The position numbers and the translations under genes are program-made. Under the pieces are notes generated by a model. That model did not search any database. It was not told where the DNA came from and saw only the letters and a list, made by a program, of their open reading frames with translations. From Macrostomum lignano (lineage: Eukaryota), in assembly GCA_002269645.1 (NCBI GenBank), contig NIVC01002648.1, positions 1 through 64,000 of the forward strand: a stretch of DNA of 64,000 bases, written 5' to 3'. This document shows positions 28,539-63,093 of the stretch, one piece after another (within the stretch, counting starts at the first letter, position 1; each line of letters starts with the position of its first letter).

Positions 28539-28544
28539 GTGAGT

Positions 28545-30122: not shown

Positions 30123-30217
30123 GTGAGCGTCTAGTCTAAAATTCACTCTACACGAAGGGGGTAGCCTGCTTACTAAAAATACTGTGAGATTTTCACTCCC
30201 TGTCCCGCCCTCCCCAG

Positions 30218-31018: not shown

Positions 31019-31084
31019 GTGAGTCGCAGTGTCTGCTGATAGTCGTAGTACAGGTCTATTTCATTTCGAATTTCTTTCCGTGTC

Positions 31085-31735
31085 TCTGGTTCAATCGCTC
31101 CAATCCAACCCTGAGAATCGCCCCAATCCAACCGTGAAAATCGCCCCAATCCAACCGTGAGAATCGCCCCAATCCAACCCTGAGAATCGCCCCAATCCAA
31201 CCCTGAGAATCGCCCCAATCCAACCGTGAGAATCGCCCCAATCCAACCGTGAGAATCGCCCCAATCCAACCGTGAGAATTGCTCCAATCCAACGGTGAGA
31301 ATCGCCCCAACCCAACCCTGAGAATCGCTCCAATCCAACCCTGAGAATCGCTCAATCCAACCCTGAGAATCGCCCCAATCCAACCCTAAGAATCGCCTCT
31401 ATCTAACCGTGAGAATCGCCCCAATCCAAGCCTGAGAATCGCCCCAATCCAAGCCTGAGAATCGCCCCAATCCAAGCCTGAGAATCGCCCCAATCCAAGC
31501 CTGAGAATCGCCCCAATCCAAGCCTGAGAATCGCCCCAATCCAAGCCTGAGAATCGCCCCAATCCAAGCCTGAGAATCGCCCCAATCCAAGCCTGAGAAT
31601 CGCCCCAATCCAAGCCTGAGAATCGCCCCAATCCAACCCTAAGAATCGCCTCTATCTAACCGTGAGAATCGCCCCAATCCAAGCCTGAGAATCGCCCCAA
31701 TCCAACCCTCAGAATCTCCCCAATCCAACCCTGAG
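31085..31735. repeat. 23-bp minisatellite TGAGAATCGCCCCAATCCAAGCC in DENND5 intron 5
   Basis: About 28 units. Confidence 0.95.
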
Positions 31736-32394
31736 GGCTGCTCCATGCTAGCCCTCCTATACAGTGCTTCAAGCAGAAAGAGGAAGAGTTCAATTAATTT
31801 TCCTCAGACAGTGGGATTTCAGATGTCCAGTGCGGTCTTAGAAAAATTTGGGCATGTGGTTTCAGGTCAATTCCATCTAGCTCAGGGAAGATCAGAGTTA
31901 AGCTGGTGGACACGGCTCTCTCTTAAATCATAACATTTTTCTAGCCATAATCTTCGCAATGCAGCCTCTCTAACTCTAAAGAAGTGTGCCCATCTGTCCT
32001 AAAATCAATGCTAAAGTACATAAGCAGCAGAATTTCTGCTTTCCATCCGCTTTTGTTTTCCTGCAAAGCTGGCGAGCTGGCAAAATTTCTGTTCACCAGG
32101 AAATTTGCGCAGTTCACGGGCTTTCCAAGTGTTTTATGCGACCCTCGATAGATTTTGTCTGTCTTGAAAACTGCTGATACCGTTCACGAAATGTGATCAT
32201 GTTTATGGCCTGCTTGAACTTTTAGATTTCTCTAGTCTTGTAAAGCCGGTCACCTGTTTTGCATTAGTCCGTTCGTCTGTAGCTGATTCTTTCTGGATTC
32301 CAGGATATTGATGAAGCACGGGGAATTTTAACAGAGTTGCTCTTAAGTGTTGAGTCTTAAGTCTTAAGTGTTGCTCTTGACTGTCAGTCTGTGC

Positions 32395-32451
<57 letters not shown>

Positions 32452-32550
32452 ATCCTAGTGTCTGTCTGCCTGCCTGCCTGCCTGTCTGTCTGTCTGTCTG
32501 TCTTAGTGTCGGTCTGTCAGCTCTGGCTGTCCTAGTGTCCGTCTGTCTGT
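32395..32550. repeat. (TCTG)n microsatellite
   Basis: Direct reading. Confidence 0.9.
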
Positions 32551-32663
32551 CTTTCTAAGAAACCGCCCAAACAAAGGACTCAGACAGTCTTAGTGTCTGA
32601 ATTGTGCTTATCTCTGAGCTTTTCCTCCAATCCGTCAGCACTCCTCATCCAACCGCCTTCAAG

Positions 32664-32997
32664 GACTACGACGAGTACGTAAAGGACGGCGAGCAGGACG
32701 TCAGCGACATGGTGTCCGGCCGGGACACGAACAAATTCGACAAGAGCGCCTTCGTCAACGACTTCCCCAACGCTTATCTCGCCTTCTTGTCGCCGTTTCT
32801 CGAGACGCAAATGTTTGCCACTCTGCTAGATTTGAAGATTTTGTCCAAGCTATCGAATCAGGAGGATTCGAACTTGCGACTATTTCACGATAGAATCGAG
32901 CAGCGCAAAATGCAGCAGCAGCGGCTTGAAGGCGGCCCTAACGCGGACCGGCTGGGTATGAAAATCTACCAGCCTGGGGCCTGCATACCCGAGTCTG
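32664..32997 (+). CDS. DENND5: DENND5 exon 6 (dDENN)
   Basis: DYDEYVKDGEQD...[32 protein letters not shown] (human [32 protein letters not shown]). Acceptor ccttcaag chosen because it restores human spacing; donor G/GTTAGT. Confidence 0.88.
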
Positions 32998-33681
32998 GTT
33001 AGTAGTAGTTTTGTGTCTACCGATATGTATAGAAAGTTATTATAGCGCAGATTGAACTTTTCCTTTTCATCTTTTTTATCCTAGTAGAGATTTGCAAAAT
33101 AAATTATGGATTCGGTGTCGCTTGCCTTTGAGTGATATATGGAGATTTATTGTTTGAAAAGGCAATGTTTGTGAGGTTTCGAGTCCTATGAGTCTAAGGA
33201 TGAGATTTTGGGTCAATTAATCTTTAGGTGAGATTTCAGACCTGTCTATCTATAGATGAGATTTTTTCATTTAAAGGAGAGATCTGTCTTTTTTATTTTG
33301 TAGAGAGATTTGTTGGGTTGTTAATCTTGGGGAGAGCAGTTTGCCACAATGTGTGGGGGATGTATGAAACCTTTTCTCCCCAAATTTCCTCAGTAGTGCA
33401 GAAAGAAATGGGAGACTTCAGACTTCCCTTTTTCAGACCCGAGCGTGTGTATAGGCGCAGTGTTGCTGTTGAGGTCATTCCAGGTCGGGGTCAGTCAGCA
33501 TCCATCATCAGGTTGCAAGCGCTGTCCCATTCTAAGCAACTTGCACGATAATACTCGTAATAATATTAATAAATATAATCTATCCTGCGGTCGCTTTGCG
33601 CCTGTTGTCAGGGGGTGAAAGAGCTTCGATAGAATGAATGATTGAATAGTAAAAAAATATAGGTTTCCTGTATGACTCGAA

Positions 33682-33706
33682 GTAAACGGCGGGAGTAACT
33701 ATGACT
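33682..33706 (+). other. 25-nt fragment of nuclear 28S rRNA (helix 69 region)
   Basis: GTAAACGGCGGGAGTAACTATGACT matches the near-universal LSU sequence just upstream of CTCTTAAGGTAGCC. Confidence 0.7.
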
Positions 33707-34750
33707 GTAGTAGATAATTAAACTGATTCGTCATATAAATATTCTCTTAGTTATTGTTAGAATACTATAGTTTTCAATGTTAGCTTAGCACAGTTCGATT
33801 TCCTAGCGTCTGTGGAATGTTTCATATTGGAAAACCCGCTTTTGCGCATCTGTTGCACCTACCTGAGGTTTTTTAGGTAAAGAGGAGGCTATGTAGCCTA
33901 TGCATATAGTCATTTTTTCAGCCTTCCACATTCGAATGAATTCGCAATTACTATATAGTAATAATATTGGATAAAAATAGAAACAGAACTTTCTCTTTCG
34001 CTTGGATAGATTAATATCTTGTTAGTTTTATAAATGGGTTCTGCCTCGCAGCAATTTACATATCCTTTGTTGACCATGCTCTGCTGTAGTGCATAGTCTA
34101 GTATTCCTAAATATTTCCTATCCCCAGTTTCTGCATTCCATCAGGTGACAAGCTATCCAATATATGCTAGTCCGTCTGACTACCGGGCTGATTCACCCTT
34201 AATTTTTTCAAAGGATTGCGAGAGGGTAGTAGTATAATTTGCGCATTGTTTAAAATTATGTGAAAAGAGGCTATTCTAAATTCAATATTGGTCTTTTTTC
34301 AAACAGGACGCTATTACTTCGGCATTTTATTTTTTATATGCCCTAGTAGTATTCTGTTATTTCACAAAGGTTTTTCTGGTTAAAAAAAGTGCTAAGAGGC
34401 ATTTTTATAATGCCGATATGTATCGAAAACTACTTTATAAAGGGCTAAATTATATGGACAAATTATTTTTTCAAGTTGAAATTACGTTGAAATATTTGAT
34501 GGCATATAGATTCATGACTATATAGGAATCGTTTTCTAACTTTTATAAAACCAATGGCCAAACTTGTGTTTTATACTTTTCCTCATTTCTGAACTAAGCA
34601 AGTTGTTATTCAAAATTCTATCTAAGAGTTGAGTTGATGCGATGGTATTTGGTATGGATCGATTATTGTGTATACAGAACTGATGAAATATAGACCATTA
34701 TAGAGAGGGAGGCAACGGGTGCTCAGATAAGACGGGGGATCGAAAGGGTC

Positions 34751-34783
34751 TATAAAAGCGAGTTTGTCTGAATGCATTTCATT
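34751..34783 (+). promoter_or_regulatory. Candidate TATA box plus initiator inside DENND5 intron 6
   Basis: TATAAAAG at 34751 and TCATT with its A at 34781, 30 nt downstream. Confidence 0.35.
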
Positions 34784-35141
34784 GCCGCTCCTATTTTATT
34801 TGGGACTTATCATCATATGAGCGTCTCCCCTAGGCCTTAGCTCAACTCGAGCAAATAGGGAAGCCAGGAATTTGCAAGGAAGAGGGAAGAGAACAACAGT
34901 GCAGCGAGCACACAGCGACCCGACTTTTGGACTTCAGGGATTTTCCCGGCTTATCTTTAGCTGAAAACTCGAACAGCAAAACGATACGAGAAATAAAGCA
35001 TATAAGAGCTAGCACTAGTACTATTAATATTGATGTTTTTATTGTCACAATAATTGCTGCTGCAGGATCTTCATTTATAGTATTCTCGGTCAGCATTATA
35101 AAGTAATACAACTTCTTTAAAAAATAGACCGTAAAAAAATT

Positions 35142-35223
35142 CGTCGCGAGCAGGATTCGAACCTGCGCGGGGAAACCCCATTGGATTTCGAGTCCAACGC
35201 CTTAACCACTCGGCCATCGCGAC
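35142..35223 (-). tRNA. tRNA-Ser(CGA)
   Basis: rc GTCGCGATGGCCGAGTGGTTAAGGCGTTGGACTCGAAATCCAATGGGGTTTCCCCGCGCAGGTTCGAATCCTGCTCGCGACG: 7-bp acceptor stem, anticodon arm TTGGA-CTCGAAA-TCCAA, long variable arm, A and B boxes, T7 terminator just downstream. Confidence 0.97.
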
Positions 35224-35346
35224 TTACTCGGTAGTTGAATGGAAGCGTCTATTTAATGGTGTTAATCATTTCACCTACTATAAGTAGAAAAGTAAACATA
35301 ATATAGCTTATTTTCAAGGTTATTTTAAATGCAAATTCTAATGCAG

Positions 35347-35606
35347 AGAGTCTATTAATCGAGAAGCGACGGCACCCGGATACGCAATGTCCGGCGCCGC
35401 ACCTATTGGAAGGTTTTCCATCCGGCTGGCAGCAGGCTGACCGCGTGCCCGGTCAGTTGGGAAAACTAAATGAAGATTTTCTGCGCCATCGGCCATTGTG
35501 CTCGCATCATTCGGTTCTGCAGACCAAAGATTGGAAGCGGGTGAAGCGGGTTAGTCAGCGAGTTCGAGCTGTTCAACATCTCAAGATCCTGTCCGAGCGA
35601 CGCGAG
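35347..35606 (+). CDS. DENND5: DENND5 exon 7
   Basis: ESLLIEKRR...PHLL...WKRVKRVSQRVRAVQHLKILSERRE, matching the human HPHLL...HTEHLRLDNDQRE segment; phases 1-0; donor GAG/GTATGT. Confidence 0.85.
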
Positions 35607-35807
35607 GTATGTAAACTTGACACTGATTTTACATTACAGTACTGTATTTAGTAATTTCATGTAGTTACCACGACTATGCACTCGGAAGGGCATGCTCACA
35701 CATGTTCACGCACAGTGTTCACTAGCCAGCGCGTGTCACTGTTTGCATTTATTATTTATTCACATGATGCTTCTTAGCGTTCACTTGTTCACTAACATAT
35801 TGCTATC

Positions 35808-36330
35808 CGTTCACCAACATCACAGCTATAATCTCACTGTTCACCAACATCACAGCTATAATCTCACTGTTCACCAACATCACAGCTAAAATCTCACTGT
35901 TCACCAACATCACAGCTATAATCTCACTATTCACCAACATCACAGCTATAATCTCACCGTTCACCAACATCACAGCTATAATATCACTGTTCACCAACAT
36001 CACAGTTATAATCTCACTGTTCACCAATATCACAGCTATAATCTCACTGTTCACCAACATCACAGCTATAATCTCACTGTTCACCAACATCACAGCTATA
36101 ATCTCACTGTTCACCAACATCACAGCTATAATCTCACTGTTCACCAACATCACAGCTATAATATCACTGTTCACCAACATCACAGCTATAATATCACTGT
36201 TCACCAACATCACAGCTATAATATCACTGTTCACCAACATCACAGCTATAATCTCACTGTTCACCAACATCACAGCTATAATATCACTGTTCACCAACAT
36301 CACAGCTATAATCTCACTGTTCACCAACAT
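35808..36330. repeat. 30-bp minisatellite GTTCACCAACATCACAGCTATAATCTCACT
   Basis: About 17 units. Confidence 0.95.
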
Positions 36331-36571
36331 CGTAGGTATTCACGGTGTGGTATTATCTGTTCCAGTTGAAGTTGCAACACAGTTCAAGTTGCCAGTTTCG
36401 TTTTGTTTGTATTGGTTGCCTTTACTTTAACAACATAATTGTTTAGGTTTGACTTAACTTTTGCTTTAAAGATTACCTTTCGTTTTGCTACCTAAAAATT
36501 ACAAGCCCGAACCATTTAATCAGTTTTGATTAACTTTGTTTACCTGTTTTCTAATTCAAATTCCTGTGCAG

Positions 36572-36607
36572 AAGGAATTGGCGGAAAAACACGCCAAGAT
36601 GTGGATT
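36572..36607 (+). CDS. DENND5: Candidate 36-nt DENND5 cassette microexon (KELAEKHAKMWI)
   Basis: Branch-like CTAAT at 36551, acceptor tcctgtgcag, donor GTAAGT; phase 0-0 fits exons 7 and 8. Confidence 0.6.
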
Positions 36608-36794
36608 GTAAGTCCCCGCGCTCTCCTTAATTATTTTGGCTTTTCTTCGTTGTATCTGTTTTATTTCTTTATTCACGACTTTTTCTGCTGCCGCTGGAGT
36701 GAGTACGTGTGTCCGCTTCCCGCCCTCCGTGTCACCTATGAGCCTTTAATCAGGTGTCAGGATGAATTGTTTTTACTCTAGAGCTCACTCAGTT

Positions 36795-37955
36795 TTCTCT
36801 TATCTCTCCTGTTTCTCCTGATATTTAGTCTCTTCTTCCCTCTCCTTTTCTTGACTTCCCTCGTTTCCCTCTTCTCCCCTTCCACCTCTTTTCTCCTCTT
36901 CCCCTCTTTTCTCCTCTTCCCCTCTTTTCTCCTCTTACCCTCTCTTCTCCTCTTCCCCTCTCTTCTCCTCTTACCCTCTTTTTCTCCTCTTCCCCTCTTT
37001 TCTCCTCTTCCCCTCTTTTCTCCTCTTCCCCTCTCTTCTCCTCTTCCCCTCTTTTCTCCTCTTACCCTCTTTTTCTCCTCTTCCCCTCTCTTCTCCTCTT
37101 CCCCTCTTTTCTCCTCTTCCCCTTTCTTCTCCTCTTCCCCTCTCTTCTCCTCTTCCCCTCTCTTCTCCTCTTCCCCTCTCTTCTCCTCTTCCCCTCTCTT
37201 CTCCTCTTCCCCTCTCTTCTCCTCTTCCCCTCTCTTCTCCTCTTCCCCTCTCTTCTCCTCTTCCCCTCTCTTCTCCCCTTCCCCTCTTTTCTCCTCTTCC
37301 CCCCTCTTCTCCTCTTCCCCTCTTTTCTCCTCTTCCCCTCTCTTCTCCTCTTCCCCTCTCTTCTCCCCTTCCCCTCTCTTCTCCTCTTCCCCTCTCTTCT
37401 CCTCTTCCCCTCTCTTCTCCTCTTCCCCTCTTTTTCTCCTCTTCCCCTCTTTTTCTCCTCTTCCCCTCTCTTCTCCTCTTCCCCTCTCTTCTCCTCTTCC
37501 CCTCTCTTCTCCTCTTCCCCTCTCTTCTCCTCTTCCCCTCTCTTCTCCCCTCTCTTCTCCTTCCCCTCTCTTCTCCTCTTCCCCTCTTTTTCTCCTCTTC
37601 CCCTCTCTTCTCCTCTTCCCCTCTTTTTCTCCTCTTCCCCTCTCTTCTCCCCTTCCCCTCTTTTCTCCTCTTCCCCTCTCTTCTCCTCTTCCCCTCTCTT
37701 CTCCTCTTCCCCTCTCCTCCTCTTCACCTCTCTTCTCCTCTTCCCCTCTCTTCTCCTCTTCCCCTCTCTTCTCCCCTTCCCCTCTTTTCTCCTCTTTCCC
37801 TCTCTTTCCCCTTCCCCCTCTTCTCCCCTCTCATTCTCTTCTCCGCCCCTCTTCTCACTTCCCCCTATTCTCCCTTCCCCTCGATCTTCTCCCATTTCCC
37901 TCTCTTTCCCCCACTCTTCTCCGTCTCCTCTCATCTCCCCCTCTCCTCTCACCCC
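36795..37955. repeat. About 1.15-kb polypyrimidine tract (unit about CTCTTCCCCTCTCTTCTC)
   Basis: Almost purely C/T on the + strand. Confidence 0.95.
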
Positions 37956-38214
37956 CTGTCCACTTTAAACGCATAATGCGTGTAACTGTTTGCCTATGCT
38001 ATGGTATTTGCTTGGGTGAAGTTCAACGTGTAAATAGAGTTTTTAGTTATCTGTTTGCTATATTTTTGCTAAGCTTATCCCCAATGAAAAATTAATATTT
38101 GCTAAACTTATTTGTTTAATTTATAGCATGTTTAACGAAGCCGAACTGTACTTCGAATTTAGCAGTGCATTTGATGGAGAATATTGCTCAAATACTCGAA
38201 TCATCCTACTACTT

Positions 38215-38250
<36 letters not shown>

Positions 38251-38534
38251 ATAATAATAATAATAATAATTAAAAATAATAGTAATAGTATAATAGTAAT
38301 AGCAAGCGAGTAATGATAAACTACTCAAGAACTACTAAAAAGCTAGTAGTAGTATCTTAAACTGTTTGCTTAATAAAATTAAAAGCTATGATTTCTTATT
38401 TTTTTAATTTACATTTTTTGTTATACACAGCCTGTTGTTGCTAGCCCGTACTTTATTTTTGCCGACTACTTGCGTAGGTATTATTAATCTATACATCCTA
38501 CACTCTCCTTTGCCTTTGTTTCGCCAACCTCCAG

Positions 38535-38660
38535 AAATACATGCAAGAAAATCGAGTGAAATCGTTGCGCCAGCCAAACTTGTCCGACATGGCGCCCTCG
38601 GTGATGGCGCAGACCAACTGGAAATTTGTGGAGGCCCTGCTCAAAGAGTGCAAGAGCAAG
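38535..38660 (+). CDS. DENND5: DENND5 exon 8
   Basis: [42 protein letters not shown] (human [31 protein letters not shown]). Confidence 0.93.
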
Positions 38661-38694
38661 GTTAGCCGCTCCCCATTTCTAACAATCACTTCCT

Positions 38695-40150
38695 CACCAG
38701 CTTCCTAGATCCCCATTTGTTATCAATTCCCCACCTTCCCAGATCCCCATTTGTTAATATCAATTCCCCACTAGCTTCCCAGATCCCCATTTATTAATAT
38801 CAATTCCCCACCGGCTTCCCAGATCCCCATTTGTTATTATCAATTCCCCACTAGCTTCCCAGATCCCCATTTGTTATTATCAATTCCCCACCGGCTTCCC
38901 AGGTCCCCATTTGTTATTATCAACTCCCCACTAGCTTCCCAGATCCCCATTTGTTATCAATTCCCCACCTTCCTAGATCCCCATTTGTTAATATCAATTC
39001 CCCACTAGCTTCCCAGATCCCCATTTATTAATATCAATTCCCCACCGGCTTCCCAGATCCCCATTTGTTGTTATCAATTCCCCACTAGCTTCCCAGATCC
39101 CCATTTGTTAATATCAATTCCCCACTGGCTTCCGAGATCCCCATTTGTTGTTATCAATTCCCCACTGGCTTCCCAGATCCCCATTTGTTAATATCAATTC
39201 CCCACTGGCTTCCGAGATCCCCATTTGTTAATATCAATTCCCCACTAGCTTTCCAGATCCCCATTTGTTAATATCGATTCCCCACCGGCTTCCCAGATCC
39301 CCATTTGTAATATCAATTCCCCACCGGCTTCCCAGATCCCCATTTATTAATATCAATTCCCCACCGGCTTCCCAGATCCCCATTTGTTAATATCAATTCC
39401 CCACCGGCTTCCCAGATCCCCATTTATTAATATCAATTCCCCACCGGCTTCCGAGATCCCCATTTGTTAATATCAATTCCCCACTGGCTTCCGAGATCCC
39501 CATTTGTTAATATCAATTCCCCACTGGCTTCCGAGATCCCCATTTGTTAATATCAATTCCCCACTGGCTTCCGAGATCCCCATTTGTTAATATCAATTCC
39601 CCACTGGCTTCCGAGATCCCCATTTGTTAATATCAATTCCCCACTGGCTTCCCAGATCCCCATTTGTAATATCAATTCCCCACTGGCTTCCGAGATCCCC
39701 ATTTGTAATATCAATTCCCCACCGGCTTCCCAGATCCGCATTTGTTAATATCAATTCCCCACCGGCTTCCGAGATCCCCATTTGTTAATATCAATTCCCC
39801 ACTAGCTTTCCAGATCCCCATTTGTTAATATCAATTCCCCACTGGCTTCCGAGATCCCCATTTGTTAATATCAATTCCCCACTGGCTTCCGAGATCCCCA
39901 TTTGTTAATATCAATTCCCCACTGGCTTCCGAGATCCCCATTTGTTAATATCAATTCCCCACTGGCTTCCGAGATCCCCATTTGTAATATCAATTCCCCA
40001 CCGGCTTCCCAGATCCCCATTTGTTAATATCAATTCCCCACTGGCTTCCGAGATCCCCATTTGTTAATATCATTTCCCCACCGGCTTCCGAGATCCCCAT
40101 TTGTTAATATCAATTCCCCACTGGCTTCCGAGATCCCCATTTGTAATATC
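38695..40150. repeat. 40-bp minisatellite CCCCATTTGTTAATATCAATTCCCCACTGGCTTCCGAGAT
   Basis: About 36 units starting about 40 nt after the exon 8 donor. Confidence 0.95.
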
Positions 40151-40265
40151 GATTCCAAAATGACTCTCGGATCCTCAATCTCAAGAGTTAAATTCCCAAA
40201 TGACCCACCTCATCATCGCATGCTACTCATTGTAAGCAGCGCCCTCGCCCATCATTGAATCCCAG

Positions 40266-40530
40266 ACTAAACGCATGGTGGTGGAAAAGATGGGACACGA
40301 GGCTCTGGAGCTCGGTCACACGGACATTGAGCTGAACGGGGTCGAAGAGAACACTCTGGTGGCGGGTCTGTGCGACCTGTTGGAGCGAATCTGGTCGCAC
40401 GGTTTGAGCACCAGGCACGGCAAATCTGCGCTGTGGTCTCACCTAAACCTGTTCTATAATAAGGAGATGGAGTTGACTAAACTGAAGCGGCAGATTCCCC
40501 AGCCTCAGCGAGTGCAGCAGCTTAATCCTG
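40266..40530 (+). CDS. DENND5: DENND5 exon 9 (start of RUN1)
   Basis: [18 protein letters not shown]...[23 protein letters not shown]...GKSALWSHL; donor G/GTAGGT, phase 1. Confidence 0.93.
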
Positions 40531-40624
40531 GTAGGTGTTTGGCTAATTTCTTTGTGCGTGCGGAAAATTTCTGTCACTCATAATAGCCATCTTTTACAAC
40601 CTGCGTCACCAGTCTGAGCCATTA

Positions 40625-41162
40625 AAACCTCTGGGTCATCGATCTGGCTCATTGGCATCTCTGGGTTATCGATATGGCTCATTGGCATCTCTGGGTCATC
40701 AATCTGGCTCATTGGCATCTCTGGGTCATCAATCTGGCTCATTGGAATCTCTGGGTCATCAATCTGGCTCATTGGCATCTCTGGGTCATCAATCTGGCCA
40801 TCAATCTAGCTCATTGGCATCTCTGGGTCATCAATCTGGCTCATCGGCATCTCTGGGTCATCAATCTGGCTCATCGGCATCTCTGGGTCATCAATCTGGC
40901 TCATTGGAATCTCTGGGTCATCAATCTGGCTCATTGGAATCTCTGGGTCATCAATCTGGCTCATTGGCATCTCTGGGTCATCAATCTGGCTCTTCGGCAT
41001 CTCTGGGTCATTAATCTGGCTCATTGGCATCTCTGGGTCATTAATCTGGCTCATCGGCATCTCTGGGTCATCAATCTGGCTCATTGGCATCTCTGGGTCA
41101 TCAATCTGGCTCATTGGCATCTCTGGGTCATCAATCTGGCTCGTTGGCATCTTTGGGTCATT
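40625..41162. repeat. 30-bp minisatellite TCATTGGCATCTCTGGGTCATCAATCTGGC
   Basis: About 18 units. Confidence 0.93.
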
Positions 41163-41444
41163 TGTTTGCTTATCGAAACAGTGTCATTATTAAAATTTCT
41201 GTTTAATAATCGAACTATCTTCAATTAAAATACCAGTAATTGCTTGCAATTTGTTTGTTATACTTAATTAGTAGCTCTTATAAAATCGGTGTCTATCATA
41301 CATTATACAATTTTTGTATACTTCTGCATTAGCACATGATTTCACAGACTTTCACTGCTGTATGTTCGTTCCTTTTCTCGCTACAAAGGTGTATTGGCAT
41401 TTGAACTAATTAAAATGAAATTAACAATATTAATAAATTTTCAG

Positions 41445-41528
41445 AAGCCAGTCCAATTAGGCACCGTGTTAAAGAGGCCCTGAGCAATATGGGCATGGAT
41501 CAGTACTCCGTGTTCAAATTCCTTAATG
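41445..41528 (+). CDS. DENND5: Candidate 84-nt DENND5 cassette exon (EASPIRHRVKEALSNMGMDQYSVFKFLN)
   Basis: Acceptor aattttcag, donor G/GTTGGT, stop-free, phase 1-1 fits exons 9 and 10; GC-richer than the AT-rich flanks. Confidence 0.5.
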
Positions 41529-41984
41529 GTTGGTCTATGATATTCGAAATTTATAGTCTCCGTTTTTAAGCACCTGTCGTAGTTTGTTTATTAGTTGCAC
41601 GATATGTTTGTTAATTATGTAATAATAACCGATTAGCTCATCCGCTAACGTGTCGGTGCAATACTAACCCCACATTTATGTAATTTTTTTACTGAGATGC
41701 CATTTATGAGCCTAGCCGGTTCTGGGTTCATTTTTTAGTTACTAACCAATACTAGTGTTTATTTCTTATACTTCAGTGCGGAATGCCTATACGAGTTAAT
41801 AGCTGCAATATGTCGTGCTTTTATTAGTATTTTTGCTCTCATCCGGTATTTATTTCGGTCGGCATTTTGATCATAATTAATGCTTTTTTACTTACTATTG
41901 ATAGTATTGTTACTAACAGTAGTGCTGTTTGGTTTGTGTTTTTATACAGAAATGCTTGGTTTTGTTCATCAATTTTTTTGCTTT

Positions 41985-42056
41985 ACCGAAACAGGATTCG
42001 AACCCCTGTCCTCCCAGACAATAGGACGAAGCGATACCCGCTCTGCCACGACTCCC
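41985..42056 (-). pseudogene. tRNA-derived SINE head or tRNA pseudogene
   Basis: rc contains A box TGGCAGAGCGG and B box GGTTCGAATCC, but no complete cloverleaf. Confidence 0.55.
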
Positions 42057-42091
42057 TCACCCAATCCACAAATAATTTTTTCAACTTTAAG

Positions 42092-42517
42092 ATGGCAGCT
42101 CATCAGGCCAACCAGACGCTGCCGTGCGCCGTGACCTCTATTCGTCCTTGAAGCGATCACGCGGTGGCAGCATGCGCGGCGGTGACCTTGCCGGCGTGTT
42201 CGGCCCGCCGCCAATTAACCTCATCGACGATATCCAACTGGTGCGCCAGCTCAAGGAGGTGCACACTGATGTTGGCAAATCGCGCGCATTCGTCCGGCTG
42301 GCACTGGAAAAGAAGCTGCTGCACGCTCATATTAAACGACTGCTCAGCGATTCTCACCTGCTCAGGGAACTTTACAAACGATTCGCTTTCCTACGCTGCG
42401 AAGAGGAGCGCGAACAATTCCTATTTCACTTGCTGTCGCTCAATGCTGTCGATTATTTTTCGTTCAGTTTGAGTTTGCCGGCTACTACTATGCTCTACCG
42501 CGTGTTTATTTACTCAG
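42092..42517 (+). CDS. DENND5: DENND5 exon 10 (RUN1)
   Basis: INLIDDI...TDVGKSRAFVRLALEKKLL...LYKRFAFLRCEEEREQFLFHLLSLNAVDYFSF; donor G/GTAAGA; phase 1-1. Confidence 0.93.
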
Positions 42518-43534
42518 GTAAGATTGACTCCTTTGGCATTACCGATATGTAGCGAAAAAGTATTGATAACTAGTGTTGATTTAATATCAGCTTTGCAACC
42601 AGTTAATTTCGGCAGGTATGTATCGAAACCTAATAACTGGTCAGCGATTTTCTTTTTGAGCCAGACAGACGCTCTTAGTTTTTGCCGATATGTATCGAAA
42701 ATCTAATAACTGGTCAGAGATTTTCTAGTAAGCCAGACAGACGCACTTAGTTTTCGCCGATATGTATCGAAAAATCAGTAACTAACAGCGATTAACTAAT
42801 ATGTATACTATTGAAGATTGGATCGATGTATGTGCGTGCTGAATAATTGTTGACTAATTAGTAACCGATATGTATCGAAACTCAACTGTCTAAAATATGA
42901 GAATCCACTCTAAACGTGACATGTCTTCATGCATGTCTCTAATGATGGGTTTTTTCAATCTATAAATGGAAGGATAGAGGATTTGAGCACATGTAAGGTC
43001 GGCTATGGTGGTTGGCACGCACCAGGGGGGCTGGGGGCTGTCCCCTCTGTCGGCTCAGCTAATAGAGCTCTAACATCTATTTTTTGTCACGAAATCCGAC
43101 CGCGCTCGATAAAGAAGCTTCAAGCACACCTGTCTGCCTGTCCTAGTCCCTAATTGACGTGGCTTGGAAGCTTCTCTCTCTATCTTGTCTGCTCTGGCCC
43201 GTTCGTCTCCCTGACCAGCTTAAGAGGCTCCGGATGATGAAGCTGGAGAGAGAAGAAAAGAAAGATAGATTGGAAGTTCGCGACCGTTCCTTTATTCCCT
43301 TCTCGCTGAACTGGGCCCCGGATCTGGGGAGGGAAAAATACTACTACGGAAATGGAGCCTGTTTCTCTTTGATCTTTGCCGCCAGCTGCTCATTTCTTCT
43401 TTGAGGGCCGAGAAACATCTATTTTTAAGCCATGGCTGGCGGTTTAACTTTGCACTTTTTGTCTTTGCTGTCTATTAATATATATCTGCTGCACATCTGT
43501 AAAGAATCTATTAACCTGTCAATCAATATATCAA

Positions 43535-44255
43535 TCTTCGACCCCATCAAATTTATCAACCTATCAAATCTACCAACCCATCAAATCTACCAACCCATCA
43601 AACCTGTCAACCCATCAAATCTACCAACCCATCAAACCTGTCAACCCATCAAATCTACCAACCCATCAAATCTACCAACCCATCAAATCTACCAACCCAT
43701 CAAACCTGTCAACCCATCAAATCTACCAACCCATCAAACCTACCAACCCATCAAATCTACCAACCCATCAAACCTGTAAACCCATCAAATCTACCAACCC
43801 ATCAAATCTACCAACCCATCAAATCTACCAACCCATCAAACCTGTAAACCCATCAAATCTACCAACCCATCAAACCTACCAACCCATCAAATCTACCAAC
43901 CCATCAAACCTGTAAACCCATCAAATCTACCAACCCATCAAACCTGTAAACCCATCAAATCTACCAACCCATCAAATCTACCAACCCATCAAATCTACCA
44001 ACCCATCAAATCTACCAACCCATCAAACCTATCAACCCATCAAATCTTATCAACCCATCAAATCTACCAACCCATCAAACCTGTAAACCCATCAAATCTT
44101 ATCAACCCATCAATCCTGTCAACCCATCAAATCTACCAACCCATCAAACCTGTCAACCCATCAAATCTTATCAACCCATCAATCCTGTCAACCCATCAAA
44201 TCTACCAACCCATCAAACCTGTCAACCCATCAAATCTACCAACCCATCAACCCAT
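43535..44255. repeat. 17-bp minisatellite AACCCATCAAATCTACC / AACCCATCAAACCTGTC
   Basis: About 42 units, ending about 12-17 nt before the exon 11 acceptor. Confidence 0.95.
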
Positions 44256-44268
44256 GCCGCCCCAATAG

Positions 44269-45209
44269 GCAAAAAGTACAGCGGCGCGAGCACCTCAGCC
44301 ACCGCCTGGTTCTGCCTCAACGGCCAGCTGGCCGACACGGGCCTGCTAGCCCTGCCTAAAGGCCAGATGCAATTCCAATTCGAGCACCCCAACCTGGGCG
44401 GCCTCACCACCCTGCGCATCGGTCACGACAACACCGGCATCTCGCCTCGCTGGTTTGTCGAATTCGTGCTGGTGCAGAACGCCTACACCGGCCACGTGTA
44501 CCGGTTCCACTGCGGCAGGTGGCTCGGCCGCGACGTTGATGACGGCAGCTCGGAGCGTCTGCTAGTGGCCGAACTGCTCCGCTCGTCCTGTCCCGGCCGG
44601 CCGTCCGGTTCTGTGTCCGGTGGCAGCGGCGGCGGCGGCACCCTTGGCCGGGAGCGCGGCCAGAGCGAGGAGCCAGCCGGAGGCGGCTTGTTCGACGGCT
44701 ACAGAACTCCACCCAGCCGCTGCCGCAGTCCCAGCCTGAGCAGGCGCGGCTCCACCGCCACCTCATCTGGGGAAGTCGGGCCTGGCGGAGGCGTCGGAGG
44801 CAACCCGGCCGGGCCAGCCGCCGCCGCTGCCTCGTCGTCCTCCTCTGCTGCCGCAGCCGCCGGAGCCACGGCCGAATCCGCCCAGCAAGGCCTTAGCGAC
44901 GCCGTCAATGCCGTTGTGAAGTTCTTCCACGGCCGGGAGTCTCCGCTGCACCAGCTGACCCTGCTGCTGTGCGGCGAGGCTGGCCTGGTGCCCGCCCTGG
45001 AGACCGCTCTGCATCTGGGCTTCCGGTCGGCCAGGTTCTTTCACATGCGCAAGCTGTACGTCTGGGATTTTGTTGACAAAGCTGTGCATCATTGTCTGGG
45101 CCAGCTGGTTACCATGGAGACGGGCAGGAAGCTGCAGGCTACCGTGTTCTGCCGATCGGCTAAACGGATTGATAATGCGGCCAGTCTGGGCAAGGATAGC
45201 AAATTGCAG
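44269..45209 (+). CDS. DENND5: DENND5 exon 11 (PLAT plus RUN2)
   Basis: NLGGLTTLRIGHDNTGISPRWFVEFVLVQN...FHCGRWLGRDVDDGSSERLLVAELL...LLCGEAGLV...SLGKDSKLQ; donor CAG/GTGAGA. Confidence 0.93.
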
Positions 45210-45231
45210 GTGAGAATCTGATTTATGCCGC

Positions 45232-46100
45232 TCTGTCTGCCTACCCAGCCTACCTATCTGCCTACCTAGCCTACCTATCTGCCTACCTAGCCTACCTATC
45301 TGCCTACCTAGCCTACCTATCTGCCTACCTAGCCTACCTATCTGCCTACCTAGCCTACCTATCTGCCTACCTAGCCTACCTATCTGCCTACCTAGCCTAC
45401 CTATCTGCCTACGTAGCCTACCTATCTGCTTACATATCCTACCTATCTGCCTACATAGCCTACCTATCTGCTTACATATCCTACCTATCTGCCTACGTAG
45501 CCTACCTATCTGCTTACATATCCTACCTATCTGCCTACGTAGCCTACCTATCTGCTTACATATCCTACCTATCGGCCTACCTAGCCTACCTATCTGCCTA
45601 CCTAGCCTACCTATCTGCCTACCTAGCCTACCTATCTGCCTACCTAGCCTACCTATCTGCCTACCTAGCCTACCTATCTGCCTACGTAGCCTACCTATCT
45701 GCCTACCTAGCCTACCTATCTGCCTACCTAGCCTACCTATCTGCCTACCTAGCCTACCTATCTGCCTACCTAGCCTACCCATCTGCCTACGTAGCCTACC
45801 TATCTGCCTACGTAGCCTACCTATCTGCCTACCTAGCCTACCTATCTGCCTACCTAGCCTACCTATCTGCCTACGTAGCCTACCTATCTGCTTACATATC
45901 CTACCTATCTGCCTACGTAGCCTACCTATCTGCCCACCCAGCCTACCTATCTGCCTACCTAGTCTACCTATCTGCCTACCCAGCTTAGCTAGCTGCCTAC
46001 CTATCTGCCTACCTAACCTACCTATTGTCTACCCAGCCTACCTCATCTGCCTACCTAGTCTACCTATCTGCCTACCCAGCTTAGCTATCTGCCTACCCAG
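45232..46100. repeat. 21-bp minisatellite CTACCTATCTGCCTACCTAGC
   Basis: About 40 units starting about 25 nt after the donor. Confidence 0.95.
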
Positions 46101-46435
46101 TCTATCCGTAGGGTCTACCTACCCTGTCTACCTGTTTGCATATCCAGTCTACCTATCTCCCTACCTAGTCTACCTATCTGCCTTTCAGCCTCCCTACCTA
46201 CCCAACCTTAGTTATCTTACCCACCCACGCACACACTACCCACTGTTTTCTACTTATCTGACCTACAATGTCTTCCCACCTTCCTTTTATAGATATGTAG
46301 TTTTGTTTCAGCATTTTAAGTTTAATAGGTTGGGTAGGTCAATAGTTTAAGAAGCTACTAATATGGAATAGAATGTCTGTCACTGTCTAATCTTGAATTA
46401 AATTATTTACGAATTAAAATTTCTTTCGCCCAAAG

Positions 46436-46642
46436 GTGTGGCTCTGTGTCGGCCTACGCGACCACCAACTATCCGGCTGGCTGTCGCTGCTGTCCGAGAG
46501 TCCGCACGCCGGCCAGTTCTACGAGCCGGGCAGTTTTATGCGCGACCCGGCTCTGCGCGATCAACTGTTGGGATTGTTGAACTCGCTGCGGGAATACCGA
46601 ATCCAGCTGGATCCTCAGCTAATGCGCGGAGTAGAGATTTGA
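46436..46642 (+). CDS. DENND5: DENND5 exon 12 (terminal)
   Basis: VWLCVGLRDHQLSGWLSLL...LDPQLMRGVEI* (human LGARDHLLHHWIALL...LETSLVKGIDI*). Confidence 0.93.
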   Translation: MWLCVGLRDHQLSGWLSLLSESPHAGQFYEPGSFMRDPALRDQLLGLLNSLREYRIQLDPQLMRGVEI

Positions 46643-47964: not shown

Positions 47965-48117
47965 CAAACTTCGACAGACAGACAGACAGACAGACAGACG
48001 GACAGACACAGACAGACGGACAGACACAGACAGACAGACAGGCAGACAGACAGACAGACAGATTGACAAACAGACACACTAAGACGGACAGACAGTCAGA
48101 CAGACGGACAGACAGTC

Positions 48118-48173
<56 letters not shown>

Positions 48174-48190
48174 GGACAGACAGCCAGACA
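47965..48190. repeat. (GACA)n microsatellite
   Basis: Direct reading. Confidence 0.9.
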
Positions 48191-48443
48191 CTAAAGAGAT
48201 ACTCAAAGACAGGCAATGACTTCCCATACCGTACTCCTTGATAAAAGAGGATCCGTGTCCGCCTGCTTGGTCCAATGACAGGGCCTCCCCCAGCTACCTT
48301 CATCCGCGCCTCAATGGCCCCATTGGCTGTCTTGAGCTTGAGTAGCTACAAAACAGACGGAATTGTCCCAGCAACCGGGACTGCTTCTTCGCCAAATCTC
48401 TCAAACCCGCGCATAGAATCTCAAGCTAAAAGTTTAGCTAGCT

Positions 48444-48533
48444 ATGTCGGCTGTTCTGGCCATCGTCCTGCTGGTCGCTGGCTCTGCCCAAGCTTTCGTT
48501 CGACTCAATGGCAACTCTGACTTCTACGTCCAG
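48444..48533 (+). CDS. Secreted cysteine-rich precursor, exon 1 (signal peptide)
   Basis: MSAVLAIVLLVAGSAQA-FVRLNGNSDFYVQ with an AxA cleavage site; donor CAG/GTGACC; CCAAT motifs upstream at about 48272 and 48321. Confidence 0.78.
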
Positions 48534-48636
48534 GTGACCCTGCATTATTCATGACAGATTTTGACTGTTTTCATACCATGAACTCTGGTAAATACGGGGC
48601 TGATTTCTCAAAAATTGGCGTTTTGTAATCTTGCAG

Positions 48637-48721
48637 TGCGAAGCCGAGGGCTCGTACTGCGTGAGCGACAGCGGCTGCTGCGAGGGACTGCAGTGCGCCG
48701 TTGGCAACAGCAACCTGCAAG
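48637..48721 (+). CDS. Secreted cysteine-rich precursor, exon 2 (knottin-like module 1)
   Basis: Acceptor aatcttgcag; CEAEGSYCVSDSGCCEGLQCAVGNSNLQ; phases 0-1. Confidence 0.8.
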
Positions 48722-48741
48722 GTCGGTTCGATTATTCTATC

Positions 48742-49215
48742 CGTAGGGAATACCCCAGCCCTCCAAGCACCCTCACTAGGAATACCCCAGCCCTCTGAGC
48801 ACCCTCACTAGGAATACCTCAGCCCTCCATACACTCAGTAGGGAATACCCCAGCCCTCCATACACTCAGTAGAGAATACCCTAGCCTTTCAAACACTCTC
48901 AGTAGGGAATGCCCCAGCCCTCCAAGCACCTTCAGTAGGGAATACCCCAGCCCTTCAAACACTCAGTAGGGAATACCCTAGCACTCCAAGCACTCACTAG
49001 GGAATACCCCAGCCCTCCAAGCACCCTCACTAGGGAATACCTCAGCCCTCCAAGCACCCTCACTAGGCAATATCCCAGCCCTCCAAACACTCAGTAGGGA
49101 ATACCCTAGCACTCCAAGCACTCACTAGGGAATACCCCAGCCCTCCAAACTCTCAGTAGGGAATACCCCAGCCCTTCAAACACTCATCAGTAGGGAATAC
49201 CCCAACCCTCCAACC
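48742..49215. repeat. About 32-bp minisatellite AGGGAATACCCCAGCCCTCCAAGCACTCAGT
   Basis: About 15 degenerate units starting about 20 nt after the donor. Confidence 0.9.
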
Positions 49216-49779
49216 CCTACTTATTCGCCCGCCAATTGAGTCTCCCTTGGCTGCAGAAATTCGAGTTTCTGCTCTCTGGTGGAGCGGCTCTTTACTCTTA
49301 TACTCTTATAAATAGTGCAGAGCCAGCTGACCGCACGAGAACAAGTAGCCCAGCTTAAGCAGCCCGCCCTAGGGGACACTTCCCACTCTGGCCATCGGAC
49401 TCTCATTCCGGGTAATTCGAGGTAATTGAATTCGGTCGCAGGCGCTGCGGTGCCCCCACCCACTCTGGCGAACGGAGAGAGACGACACCGCGAGGGCTGT
49501 TATATTCCCCAATTGCCTATTCCCAATTGGGATTCCTCCTTCCCTTCCCCTCACTGCACCCTCTCCATCCTCTCCTATATATTTTTTCGCAGTTCGCAGA
49601 CTTCTGATTGACGGGGGAACTTGTCGAGTTCTAGCTGGGGTCGGATTTGCTAGTTAAATGTCTGAGCTATGAGCAAATGAGCAAATTCAACCATCACTGC
49701 TGATCAGCCAGCCTAGCAATGCATTTCGAACTTGATCGAATCTAATCGATTCATACACCCACGAGCTCGTACCCATGCA

Positions 49780-50795
49780 AATTCAAACATCTCCTTCCCG
49801 ACTCACACATCTCCTTCCCGATTCACACACCCACCCAATTCACACATCTTCCCGATTCACATCTCCATCCTGATTCACACATTACCCAATTCACACACCT
49901 AGCCGAAACACACATATCCGATTCACACACCTACCCGAAACACACATCCTCCAAATTCAAACATCTCCTTCCCGATTCACACACCTACCAAATTCACACA
50001 CTTACTGAATTCACACATCTCCTTCCCGACTCACACATCTCCTTCCCGACTCACATCTCCTTCCCGACTCACACATCTCCTTCCCGATTCACATCTCCTT
50101 CCCGATTCACATCTCCTTCCCGATTCACACACCCACCCAATTCACACATCTTCCCGATTCACATCTCCATCCTGATTCACACATTACCCAATTCACACAC
50201 CTAGCCGAAACACACATCCTCCAAATTCAAACATCTCCTTCCCGATTCACACACCTACCAAATTCACACACTTACTGAATTCACACATCTCCTTCCCGAT
50301 TCACACATCTCATTCCCGATTCACACATCTCCTTCCCGATTCACATCTCCTTCCCGATTCACATCTCCTACCCGATTCACATCTCCTTCCCGATTCACAC
50401 ATCTCCTTCCCAATTCACATCTCCTTCCCGATTCACATCTTCCAAATCCAAACATCTCCTTCCCGATTCACGCACCTACCTGATTCACGCAACTATACGA
50501 TTCACATCTTCCTTCCCGATTCACATCTCCTTCCCGATTCACACACCTATCCGATTCACACATCTGCTTCCTGATTCACACTTTTTCTTCCCGATTCACA
50601 TCTCCTTCCCGACTCACACATCTCCTTCCAAATTCACAACATCTCCTACCCGATTCACACACACACACACACACAGACACCTTCCCGATTCCTACAGCTT
50701 TCCAATTCACAACATCTCCTACCCAATTCACACACCTACCCGATTCACACATATCCTACCGGATTCACACACCTCCAACCCGATTCACACATCTA
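49780..50795. repeat. About 20-bp minisatellite ATTCACACATCTCCTTCCCG
   Basis: Degenerate tandem array running up to the exon 3 acceptor region. Confidence 0.9.
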
Positions 50796-50816
50796 CCTCT
50801 TTTTCATGCGCATCAG

Positions 50817-51193
50817 GCATGGGCGGCTTCTGTCGCCGACGCGGTCACGGCGATTCGTCGCCGCCCGTCTCCGCCGCCTCGTCATCCAGTTCGAGCTACG
50901 AGCTGCCGGCCCAGCCCAGCTTCCTGTCCCGCAGCTGCACCCAGGACTCGGACTGTCCGGCCGGCCAGTGCTGCAACCGCCGTCCAGTTGGATTCCGAGG
51001 CAGCCTTGTAGCCTCCTGCGACTCCGACTGCAACTATCAGGGCATTGACGACCTGCTTGGCGACTACTACAGCCGCTACTATCGCCGGGCCGCCCGAGGC
51101 AAGAAGTCGGCGAAGCATCACGGCCGCCATCACGACGAAGACAGTCACGGCAAGGACGAAGACAAGAAAAAGAAGAAGAAGGCCAGCAATTGA
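50817..51193 (+). CDS. Secreted cysteine-rich precursor, exon 3 (6th Cys of module 1, module 2, His/Lys-rich tail)
   Basis: Acceptor gcgcatcag, phase 1; GMGGFCRRRG...CTQDSDCPAGQCCNRRPVGFRGSLVASCDSDC...KKKKKKASN*. Confidence 0.8.
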
Positions 51194-51294: not shown

Positions 51295-51530
51295 CTAGAC
51301 GGACAGGTAGACAGACAGGTAGACGGACAGGTAGACAGACAGGTAGACGGACAGGTAGACAGACAGGTAGACGGACAGGTAGACAGACAGGTAGACGGAC
51401 AGGTAGACAGACAGGTAGACGGACAGGTAGACGGACAGGTAGACGGACGGTTAGACGGACAGGTAGACGGACAGGTATACGGATAGGTAGACAGACAGGT
51501 AGACAGACAGGTAGACAGACAGGTGGACAG
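51295..51530. repeat. 12-bp repeat AGAC(A/G)GACAGGT
   Basis: Direct reading. Confidence 0.9.
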
Positions 51531-51765
51531 ACTGGCGTTTACCATCTATATTTTTTACTTCAACCTCCGCAGCAGCGCGATGCAATCCAAGCGGCATATT
51601 TTACAGCTTCAGCCTCCTCCCCCCCCCCAGTTGATAAAATCCCTTGCAATCGCCCAAGCGAGCATCTAAACGCAGGGCACGACCGTCGGGTCCGCCGTTT
51701 GAGTAAATAAAACTAATCAATTGTTGAGCATATTACAACTGCATTTTCTTGACTTCTCTTTAAGT

Positions 51766-62127: not shown

Positions 62128-63093
62128 GGCCGCCAGCCAGGTCGCGCGCCCATTGGCTGGGCGGATCCATGGGGGTGGGGGTTGGAGGGCAGGCAGGCGC
62201 GCTGTTCCGAAATCGCTCTCTCTCCCCCAGGCAGAGGGCGCGGGCAGGGCTATTAAAGTTGCGATCCAAGCGAAGGCTTCCAAATTACACCAAGACCAAA
62301 GGCTGCCAGTAAGCACAGAGCATCAACGGTGTTTGATCTGCAGTTTCACCAAAGCCCTGCTAACTTCAGCATCTCTGCCTGCACGATGCCAGCCGCAGTG
62401 ACTCCATTCGAGCAGTTCAGCAAAGCCGAGTCGCATCTCATCAAGCGGCTTGGCAGACACGCTGACGAGCGAATCTTTGAGCTGAGCACTTGGGAATCAG
62501 CTGATCGGGATCTGCTCGGTCTGTTCCCCGCCATCTCCAGCGCTCTCACTGTGCTCAACGATGACCAAAAACTGAGGCACGAGTCCGCGACCTCACCAGA
62601 TGATACGCAGCGATCATCGCCCTGCTCCCTGACCGGATCCTCATCCTCAGACTCCTCCGGCGCCTCATCCTCATCATGCGTGTCCGCCTTATCAGCTTCA
62701 TCTCGCAGCTCAGCTGGTGGTGCAGCCTCCCCCAACGGCCAGAAGCCTGCGGCTGCCAGGTGGTGCCAGCCCGGCTTGAAGGACCTGCAGCTTCTTGCCA
62801 GCAAGGAGGACGTGGCCAGCCTCCCAGAGCCTCATCAATCGAAGAGGTGCTGGCCCTGCTCAGCAAGGATGACGTCATCGTGGTGCCCTGCGCTCACGGC
62901 GGCTACATTCTGTACGCGGTGACCTACTTGGACGATCTGGTGGCACAGCAGCCGCCGACTGTGATCCCTCCGAGTCCTGACGACCCGGCAACCAAGCTGA
63001 GCCCAGAGGTGTTCAACTTGTTCCTGCAGAACGAGGAGCTGCTGAGCCGCGGACAGGACACCTCGCTGCTCGGAGTCCCGCCTGCTCTGTCAT
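62128..63093 (+). repeat. Dispersed 966-bp cassette, copy B (promoter motifs plus orphan ORF1/ORF2)
   Basis: ATTGG and GGGCGG boxes at about 62152-62165, TATTAAAG at 62251, ATG at 62386 (MPAAVTPFEQFSKAESHLIKRLG...); the second frame SIEEVLALLSKDDVIVVPCAHGGYILYAVTY... ends at 63128. Confidence 0.9.

Follow-up and report, generated by a model that had tools for sequence, protein, structure and literature searches.

Within a 64,000-nucleotide (nt) stretch of contig NIVC01002648.1 of the flatworm Macrostomum lignano (assembly GCA_002269645.1), here called the window, lies the gene Mlig032172, which has three exons, is transcribed and encodes a small, predicted secreted protein with two cysteine-rich modules. 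The coding parts of the exons sum to 90 + 85 + 377 = 552 nt, corresponding to 183 amino acids (aa) and a stop codon, and the two introns, both of the GT..AG type, lie in phases 0 and 1, respectively. An exact look-up retrieved the 183-aa product from GenBank as PAA49197.1, PAA56235.1 and PAA92605.1, located on three contigs of the public Mlig_3_7 genome and named hypothetical protein BOX15_Mlig032172g1/g2. The first-pass annotation, made from the letters of the window, had called the gene unannotated, which is incorrect; its three-exon model with consistent phases and 183 residues agrees exactly with the GenBank protein. The GenBank models of Mlig_3_7 were derived from an RNA-seq-based transcriptome only, using StringTie/TACO and de novo assembly, with experimental mapping of the trans-splice and poly(A) sites at which transcripts were cut, and with open reading frames (ORFs) predicted by TransDecoder (PMC5730564). 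Because the matching annotation was built only from RNA-seq data, it supports the splicing of the three exons.

The features of the locus are listed in Table 1, along with the neighboring genes and the other members of the family. The product runs ...LLGDYYSRYYRR to aa 149, with YYSRYYRR at aa 142-149. The signal-like start, the two cysteine modules, the RRR site, the Ser-rich linker, the Tyr-rich segment ending in RR and the His/Asp/Lys-rich tail are all found as first described, and the expectation of a small, predicted secreted, disulfide-rich protein with two modules in a flatworm was thereby borne out.

Table 1. Features of the Mlig032172 locus and its surroundings (window positions), and the contigs and genes of the paralog groups.
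Feature	Position	Strand	Description
Exon 1	48444-48533	+	90 nt; ATG at 48444; donor GTGACC; ends in phase 0
Exon 1, content	48444-48533	+	Signal peptide and mature N-terminal segment FVRLNGNSDFYVQ
Signal peptide, aa 1-17	48444-48494	+	MSAVLAIVLLVAGSAQA, followed by F; predicted cleavage between AQA and F
Intron 1	48534-48636	+	103 nt; GT..AG
Exon 2	48637-48721	+	85 nt; acceptor cttgcAG; donor GTCGGT; ends in phase 1
Exon 2, content	48637-48721	+	Module 1, Cys I-V, CEAEGSYCVSDSGCCEGLQCAVGNSNLQ
Intron 2	48722-50816	+	2095 nt; GT..AG; mostly two minisatellite arrays
Intron 2, arrays	48743-49213; 49781-50794	+	31-bp unit; 18-20-bp unit
Exon 3	50817-51193	+	377 nt; acceptor gcatcAG; stop TGA at 51191-51193
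Exon 3, start	50817-50833	+	Module 1, final loop with Cys VI (aa 64)
Linker, aa 65-98	50834-50935	+	RRR first (aa 65-67, 50834-50842), then Ser/Pro-rich; predicted disordered
Module 2, aa 99-130	50936-51031	+	C-x5-C-x4-CC-x14-C-x3-C; invariant core D-C-P-x-x-x-C-C
Conserved C-terminal segment, aa 131-149	51032-51088	+	NYQGIDDLLGDYYSRYYRR; predicted helical; basic RR at its end
His/Asp/Lys-rich tail, aa 150-183, and stop	51089-51193	+	Seen in the window paralog only
AG acceptor	48436-48437	+	6 nt upstream of the ATG; candidate spliced-leader trans-splice site
TFIIS/Med26-type gene	8812-13498	+	Upstream of the DENN/RUN/PLAT gene
221-aa frame, first	17403-18068	-	Near-identical to the second
DENN/RUN/PLAT gene	27782-46642	+	Multi-exon; upstream neighbor
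Mariner-type transposase ORF	28706-29536	-	Inside the DENN/RUN/PLAT gene
Array before the gene	47973-48190		(GACA)n
Array after the gene	51296-51532		(TAGACGGACAGG)n
221-aa frame, second	62257-62922	+	Near-identical to the first
Group B	contig C460		Mlig005172
Group C	contig C46		Mlig015013
Group D	contig C2116		Mlig016503
Group E	contig C4963		Mlig031025
Group F	contig C10		Mlig030832
Group G	contig C1587		Mlig022787

The gene is present three times in the assembly, in the window (contig C2648) and on contigs C44 and C3952, and all 552 coding bases are 100% identical across these copies. Unique non-coding sequence differs between the copies by about 0.4-0.6% plus indels; intron 1 has two to three differing positions and one gap relative to the other two copies, and the lengths of the intron 2 arrays vary among all three. 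This pattern of copies fits the known recent polyploidy of M. lignano (PMC10733133). We rejected the exon identity as proof of purifying selection: at the rate seen in non-coding sequence, any two copies should differ at only about two to three coding positions, so the lack of coding differences is weak evidence for selection.

The window gene is one member of a family that comprises at least seven paralog groups, all with the same fixed architecture and here called group A (the window gene) and groups B to G. The additional loci were located by six-frame searches of the genome, and the hand-built gene models for the six other groups turned out to be letter-for-letter equal to GenBank proteins; most of these groups contain two to four near-identical copies each. 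The six groups share 27-44% identity with the window protein and have kept all 12 cysteines. In every group, exon 1 (end phase 0) covers the signal peptide and the motif [FY][IVLA][RG][ILT]xxG, exon 2 (end phase 1) contributes Cys I-V of module 1, and exon 3 supplies Cys VI, the linker, module 2 and L[LF]xxYYSxxx, followed by basic residues. The motif directly follows the signal peptide in all seven groups, the phase-1 intron separates Cys V from Cys VI of module 1 at the identical place in every paralog, and a conserved L-x-x-x-YYS segment with a basic site behind it is shared across the family. Besides the 12 cysteines, the residues G23, G35, G62, D104, P106, Y142 and Y143 are invariant. The exact GenBank protein on three contigs, together with an exon plan and 12 cysteines that are kept in six paralog groups, places the gene far beyond what chance would produce.

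Relatives were sought well beyond the species. Single-sequence searches of Pfam, the PDB and an index of 5.8 billion proteins gave nothing significant. When 1.84 billion cluster representatives were searched by phmmer with the mature protein as the query, four matches were recovered, namely paralogs B and E, a marginal protein from Tetrahymena with two knots like that of module 1, and a 6326-aa protein; the last of these, the top match, is a Gly/Ala-rich repeat protein with 0.1% cysteine and was rejected as compositional. Profiles built from six and seven paralogs and searched against the 5.8 billion proteins, in a word-limited search, recovered only M. lignano entries at expectation values (E) up to 10. 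The family thus appears, so far, to be confined to M. lignano. The first-pass annotation had left room for membership in a well-known conserved family; by the searches run, with no Pfam family at cut-off and only M. lignano relatives, the protein is not such a member. The automatic names in UniProt include ixodegrin, ITG-like peptide, WAP domain, prokineticin domain, disintegrin domain and calglandulin, and they should not be taken as family assignments because entries that are only one or two residues apart carry different names. A literature search found no study linking Macrostomum with knottin, prokineticin or ixodegrin terms, and the gene identifiers were not found in the papers searched or in the searchable supplements of M. 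lignano papers.

Module 1 of the window protein (aa 31-64) has the pattern C-x6-C-x5-CC-x4-C-x13-C, and the spacing 6-5-0-4-(10 to 14) recurs in all seven groups. The consensus of the inhibitor cystine knot (ICK), or knottin, is about CX3-7CX3-6CX0-5CX1-4CX4-13C, and the loop lengths of module 1, with its C-C-CC-C-C framework, fall within it. A profile made from six N-terminal paralog pieces was searched against all PDB sequences and gave 18 matches, all of which are ICK or ICK-like peptides. The best match was the remipede toxin Xt3a (E 3.8e-6), both domains of which were recovered (0.008 and 0.048 each), followed by tachystatins (E 0.04-0.1), DkTx (E 0.2) and then other spider toxins; all matches other than Xt3a have E-values of 0.04 or above. 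Xt3a is itself a toxin with two ICK domains in tandem (PMC9950431). Among the Pfam knottin families, which all stayed below cut-off, Conotoxin_I2 and Toxin_12 reached at best 14.8 and 13.9 bits, versus cut-offs of 27 and 21.

An AlphaFold2 model of a 51-aa piece containing module 1, predicted from an alignment of six sequences, has a predicted local distance difference test score (pLDDT) of 71-84 in its core, with strands, at residues 31-34 and 45-49, around Cys V/Cys VI. The Foldseek list obtained with this model is dominated by knottins, including poecitoxin, psalmotoxin, hanatoxin, SGTx1, tachystatin B, a conotoxin and EETI-II, at target-normalized template modeling (TM) scores of about 0.6-0.76 and root-mean-square deviations (rmsd) of 0.9-2.9 Å. 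The spider knottins have target-normalized TM-scores of 0.67-0.76 and rmsd of 1.7-2.7 Å, and tachystatin B was aligned over 46 columns with an rmsd of 1.9 Å. The list is headed by the cysteine-rich domain of Draxin and also contains Dkk1. From the spacing, the profile matches and the predicted model, we infer that module 1 behaves like an ICK domain. We do not claim kinship to any one toxin family, and the pattern may reflect a convergent spacing of cysteines. The Tetrahymena thermophila protein mentioned above (XP_001031946.2, P0004, named "transmembrane protein") contains two modules with C-x6-C-x6-CC-x4-C spacing, one of which passes the Pfam cut-off for Toxin_12 (22.1 bits versus 21). Since this protein contains two such similar modules, the knottin-like pattern evidently recurs widely.

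Module 2 is of a different kind. All six of its cysteines are present in each of the seven groups, with the spacing 5-4-0-(14 to 20)-(2 to 8), so that its loops contain 14-20 residues where an ICK has about 1-4, and 2-8 residues where an ICK has about 4-13. Furthermore, an AlphaFold2 model of the exon-3 translation has a predicted beta hairpin between Cys IV and Cys V (pLDDT about 82), not between Cys V and Cys VI. We therefore rejected module 2 as an ICK on account of its loop lengths and the position of the hairpin, and the term double-knottin that was first applied to the protein holds for module 1, through its spacing, profile and model, but not for module 2. The pattern C-x5-C-x2-G-x2-C-x14-C fits the consensus of the disulfide-directed beta-hairpin, and prokineticin-type proteins have this spacing in their N-terminal sub-domain. 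A published description of the colipase fold treats it as a pair of disulfide-directed hairpin motifs (bioRxiv 10.1101/485722).

The matches of module 2 to named families are weak. The module 2 profile scored E 0.04 against a granulin-type domain and E 0.31 against mamba intestinal toxin 1 (MIT1), whose N-terminal half it matches cysteine for cysteine. The highest of the sub-threshold Pfam matches is Dickkopf_N (15.5 bits versus a cut-off of 25), which hits module 1 or module 2 depending on the member, and Pfam Prokineticin, searched at E up to 10, matches no member of the family. A resemblance to prokineticin and Dickkopf modules, also put forward at first, is thus a better description of module 2 than knottin, whereas membership in these families was rejected: for prokineticin/AVIT because the module is internal, has six rather than ten cysteines, lacks an AVITGA N-terminus and is not matched by the family model, and for Dickkopf because each module has six cysteines rather than ten and Dickkopf_N stays below its cut-off. 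The mature N-terminus is instead [FY][IVLA][RG][ILT]xxG, located about 10 residues before module 1. The structural comparison advised in the first-pass annotation gave a knottin-dominated list for module 1, although at E-values of 0.07 or above, and nothing below E 1 for the exon-3 model in Foldseek. We tentatively describe module 2 as a six-cysteine, half-colipase-like hairpin module, with low confidence.

The segments around module 2 differ in how well they have been conserved. The linker, with a pLDDT below 50 in the model, is 14-39 aa long and cannot be aligned between paralogs. The C-terminal segment forms a helix in the model (pLDDT about 59), and a basic site is found 3-7 residues past the YYS motif in six groups, with a single Arg at this place in group F. 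Behind the basic site, the other paralogs have 0-8 residues, versus the His/Asp/Lys-rich tail (aa 150-183) of the window gene. Since the C-terminal basic site is kept and the RRR site is not, trimming of the C-terminal end is the likely conserved event, rather than separation of the modules, and it would probably remove the tail of the window protein.

We favor, with somewhat better than even confidence, the hypothesis that the gene encodes a secreted ligand of a lineage-restricted family, in which two modules are kept on one chain that is trimmed at its C-terminal end. The signal peptide would be removed after AQA and the protein secreted. Module 1 would fold as an ICK domain, and module 2 would resemble the N-terminal half of colipase-fold domains of the prokineticin/Dickkopf type, folding as a disulfide-directed beta-hairpin that one extra disulfide closes. 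Both modules would normally remain joined through the flexible tether, and the C-terminal extension (the His/Asp/Lys tail in the window protein) would be clipped off by a convertase that acts at the conserved basic site. The mature product might then act outside the cell as a binding ligand of a receptor, a channel or a surface target. The divergence of the paralogs, whose modules range from acidic to basic, may point to different targets, which would agree less well with one conserved hormone axis than with defence, reproduction or other contacts with partners from outside.

Several points weigh against this hypothesis. Every functional step in it is inferred, and toxin-like, antimicrobial, reproductive and hormonal roles would each be compatible with a predicted secreted protein of two modules. 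The signal peptide was judged by eye, and no family member has a Pfam family at cut-off. The predicted models rest on alignments of six sequences, the disulfide pairing cannot be read from them, and no E-value in Foldseek was below 0.07 for the model of module 1. Finally, the RRR site directly follows module 1 in the window paralog, which may thus be cut into two peptides.

The last point is the starting point for the explanation that survives best beside ours, namely that convertases cut at both RRR and RR and release two separate knottin peptides, acting as toxins or neuropeptides. We consider this unlikely, but it deserves to be taken seriously. The RRR site lies directly past Cys VI of module 1, and the RR site past the Tyr-rich segment; in groups B and G, an RR lies at another place in the linker, and module 1 is indeed ICK-like. 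Group E (contig C4963, L056:3440-3715) ends in ...YENYYPRRFGR-stop, of which the last residues read as an amidation signal of possible RF-amide type (a Gly donor and a basic residue), although an amidation-type Gly is found in this group only among the seven. On the other side, RRR right after module 1 is found in the window paralog only, a dibasic site in the linker is present in just three of the seven groups (A, B and G) and missing from C, D, E and F, and the loops and predicted hairpin of module 2 do not fit an ICK. The processing into separate peptides suggested in the first-pass annotation is therefore not supported as a general mechanism. Moreover, M. lignano eats diatoms, so a toxin for prey capture is not expected.

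A bolder variant of the one-chain hypothesis, which we regard as speculative and rather improbable, is that the family represents heterotypic "two-headed" ligands born in the flatworms. A knottin tethered to a half-colipase-fold hairpin would bind two sites on a channel or receptor at once, and such ligands would have radiated in Macrostomum as weapons or manipulators, in defence, in mating conflict through the seminal fluid, or against microbes. If true, free-living flatworms would gain their first described family of knottin-based effectors, one with a bivalent architecture that is not made of repeats.

Two more specific roles for the secreted product have, in our view, only a small chance each of being correct, and we rate them alike. 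One hypothesis is that the product is a host-defence protein of the mucus or epidermal glands, antimicrobial or surface-binding like the tachystatins, which are antimicrobial peptides with an ICK fold. The tachystatins are the second-best matches of the module 1 profile, and tachystatin B could be aligned with the structural model; in addition, the tail is rich in Lys and His, and the family is multi-copy, diverging and lineage-restricted. However, both modules of the window paralog are acidic (isoelectric points of 4.1 and 4.6), and the cationic tail, missing from the other paralogs, sits past a conserved cleavage site.

The other hypothesis is that the product is a reproductive secretion, either a seminal-fluid protein of the prostate gland or a component of the female tract or the eggshell. 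Proteins of this type tend to be small and secreted, to be specific to a lineage and to evolve fast, and no homologs were found outside M. lignano; the hypervariable linkers and the several diverged paralogs would also be in line with such a role. Many prostate-limited transcripts of unknown homology have been reported in M. lignano (PMC5977470). The identifiers of our genes were not found in the searchable supplements, and no feature of the sequence is specific to reproduction.

The surroundings of the gene bear on the question of where it begins. The upstream gene on the same strand has a uDENN-DENN-dDENN-RUN-PLAT-RUN architecture of the DENND5/Rab6IP1 type, here abbreviated DENN/RUN/PLAT, and ends with its own stop codon at 46640-46642, 1.8 kb upstream, with A+T-rich sequence thereafter. 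A UniProt model from an older assembly (P0012, A0A1I8IQR4, 563 aa) joins this gene to ours through the AG acceptor listed in Table 1, with a junction that reads ...QLMRG-LA-MSAVLAIV, and another old model, P0005, likewise fuses paralog B to a different upstream gene. About 7% of the transcripts in M. lignano are polycistronic precursors that are resolved by trans-splicing (PMC5730564), and because of this we read both fusions as precursor or prediction artefacts, which suggests that the AG dinucleotide is a candidate spliced-leader acceptor. That the three exons are an alternative 3' end of the DENN/RUN/PLAT gene, as in the older model with its join of ...QLMRG to LA-MSAV..., is highly improbable given the upstream gene's own stop and the A+T-rich sequence behind it, the separate 183-aa gene on all three copies in the RNA-seq-based GenBank annotation, a signal peptide that would make no sense internally, and six paralog groups that have the same stand-alone plan next to different neighbors, with paralog B fused to another gene.

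A few other observations were made in the window. The introns of the DENN/RUN/PLAT gene are packed with minisatellites, and a 277-aa mariner-type transposase ORF (Pfam Transposase_1, E 5e-11) lies inside this gene. Further upstream, another gene codes for a helical domain of the TFIIS/Med26 type, long stretches rich in Gln/Ser, an in-frame tandem repeat of 14 residues (GSGSWKRKLEAEA...) and a CCCH-like motif at the C-terminus. A paralog of this gene, with 46% identity over 121 aligned residues, is located directly upstream of paralog B (C460), and from these neighbors it seems that groups A and B may sit in paralogous chromosome segments. Two near-identical 221-aa frames in inverted orientation, 44 kb apart, have overlapping long frames on both strands and no Pfam match, and could represent a duplicated gene or a repeat element. 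Related microsatellite and minisatellite arrays bracket our gene, about 250 bp before the ATG and about 100 bp past the stop, and the window as a whole is dense in tandem arrays with units of 12-60 bp.

Taken together, we consider this an ordinary, uncharacterized and lineage-restricted family of secreted proteins, of modest interest, with an unusual pairing of modules. The record is corrected in that the gene was annotated already, and in that the automatic names of the paralogs contradict one another and have no backing from family models. If the proposed architecture holds, the family would be a lineage-restricted addition to the few natural two-domain disulfide-rich ligands, and it would place a knottin-type module in a free-living flatworm amenable to transgenesis and RNA interference, so that its biology could be tested in vivo.

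How does the protein compare with known systems? With the ICK peptides of arthropods, such as spider toxins, tachystatins and the domains of Xt3a, module 1 shares the C-C-CC-C-C framework with loops of 6-5-0-4-13, a Gly two residues past the CC pair and a predicted two-stranded sheet around Cys V/Cys VI; all PDB matches of its profile are peptides of this kind, and the model reaches a target-normalized TM-score of about 0.7. It differs in that the host is a flatworm, that no Pfam knottin family reaches its cut-off, that the module is part of a 130-residue protein with two modules, and that a phase-1 intron precedes Cys VI. Ixodegrin and the ITG-like peptide, after which paralogs B and G were automatically named, are likewise small, secreted, cysteine-rich proteins of arthropods with a weak pipeline match, but neither was among the profile matches at E up to 10 in the word-limited search.

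The colipase-fold domains of prokineticin, MIT1, the Dickkopf C-terminus and Draxin resemble module 2 in the pattern C-x5-C-x4-CC followed by a hairpin to the next cysteine; the match is to their N-terminal sub-domain, and some paralogs have been automatically named "Prokineticin domain-containing". In contrast to these domains, module 2 has six cysteines rather than ten, no second sub-domain and no AVITGA, and every score is non-significant (E 0.31 for the profile, above 1 for the fold). The precursors of prohormones and neuropeptides provide another point of comparison: all members of the family have a signal-like N-terminus, three of the seven groups have a dibasic site between the modules, and six groups have the basic site behind YYS.

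The tandem cysteine-rich toxins, such as DkTx, Hi1a and Xt3a ("SCREP", PMC6262176), repeat one type of domain across short linkers, whereas the two modules here differ in spacing (6-5-0-4-13 versus 5-4-0-14-3) and in predicted topology, and are accompanied by a disordered linker of 14-39 residues, an extra conserved helix and no venom apparatus. Yet the two systems are alike in that two disulfide-rich modules are joined by a linker on one secreted chain, an arrangement that would allow bivalent binding, as in the tandem toxins.

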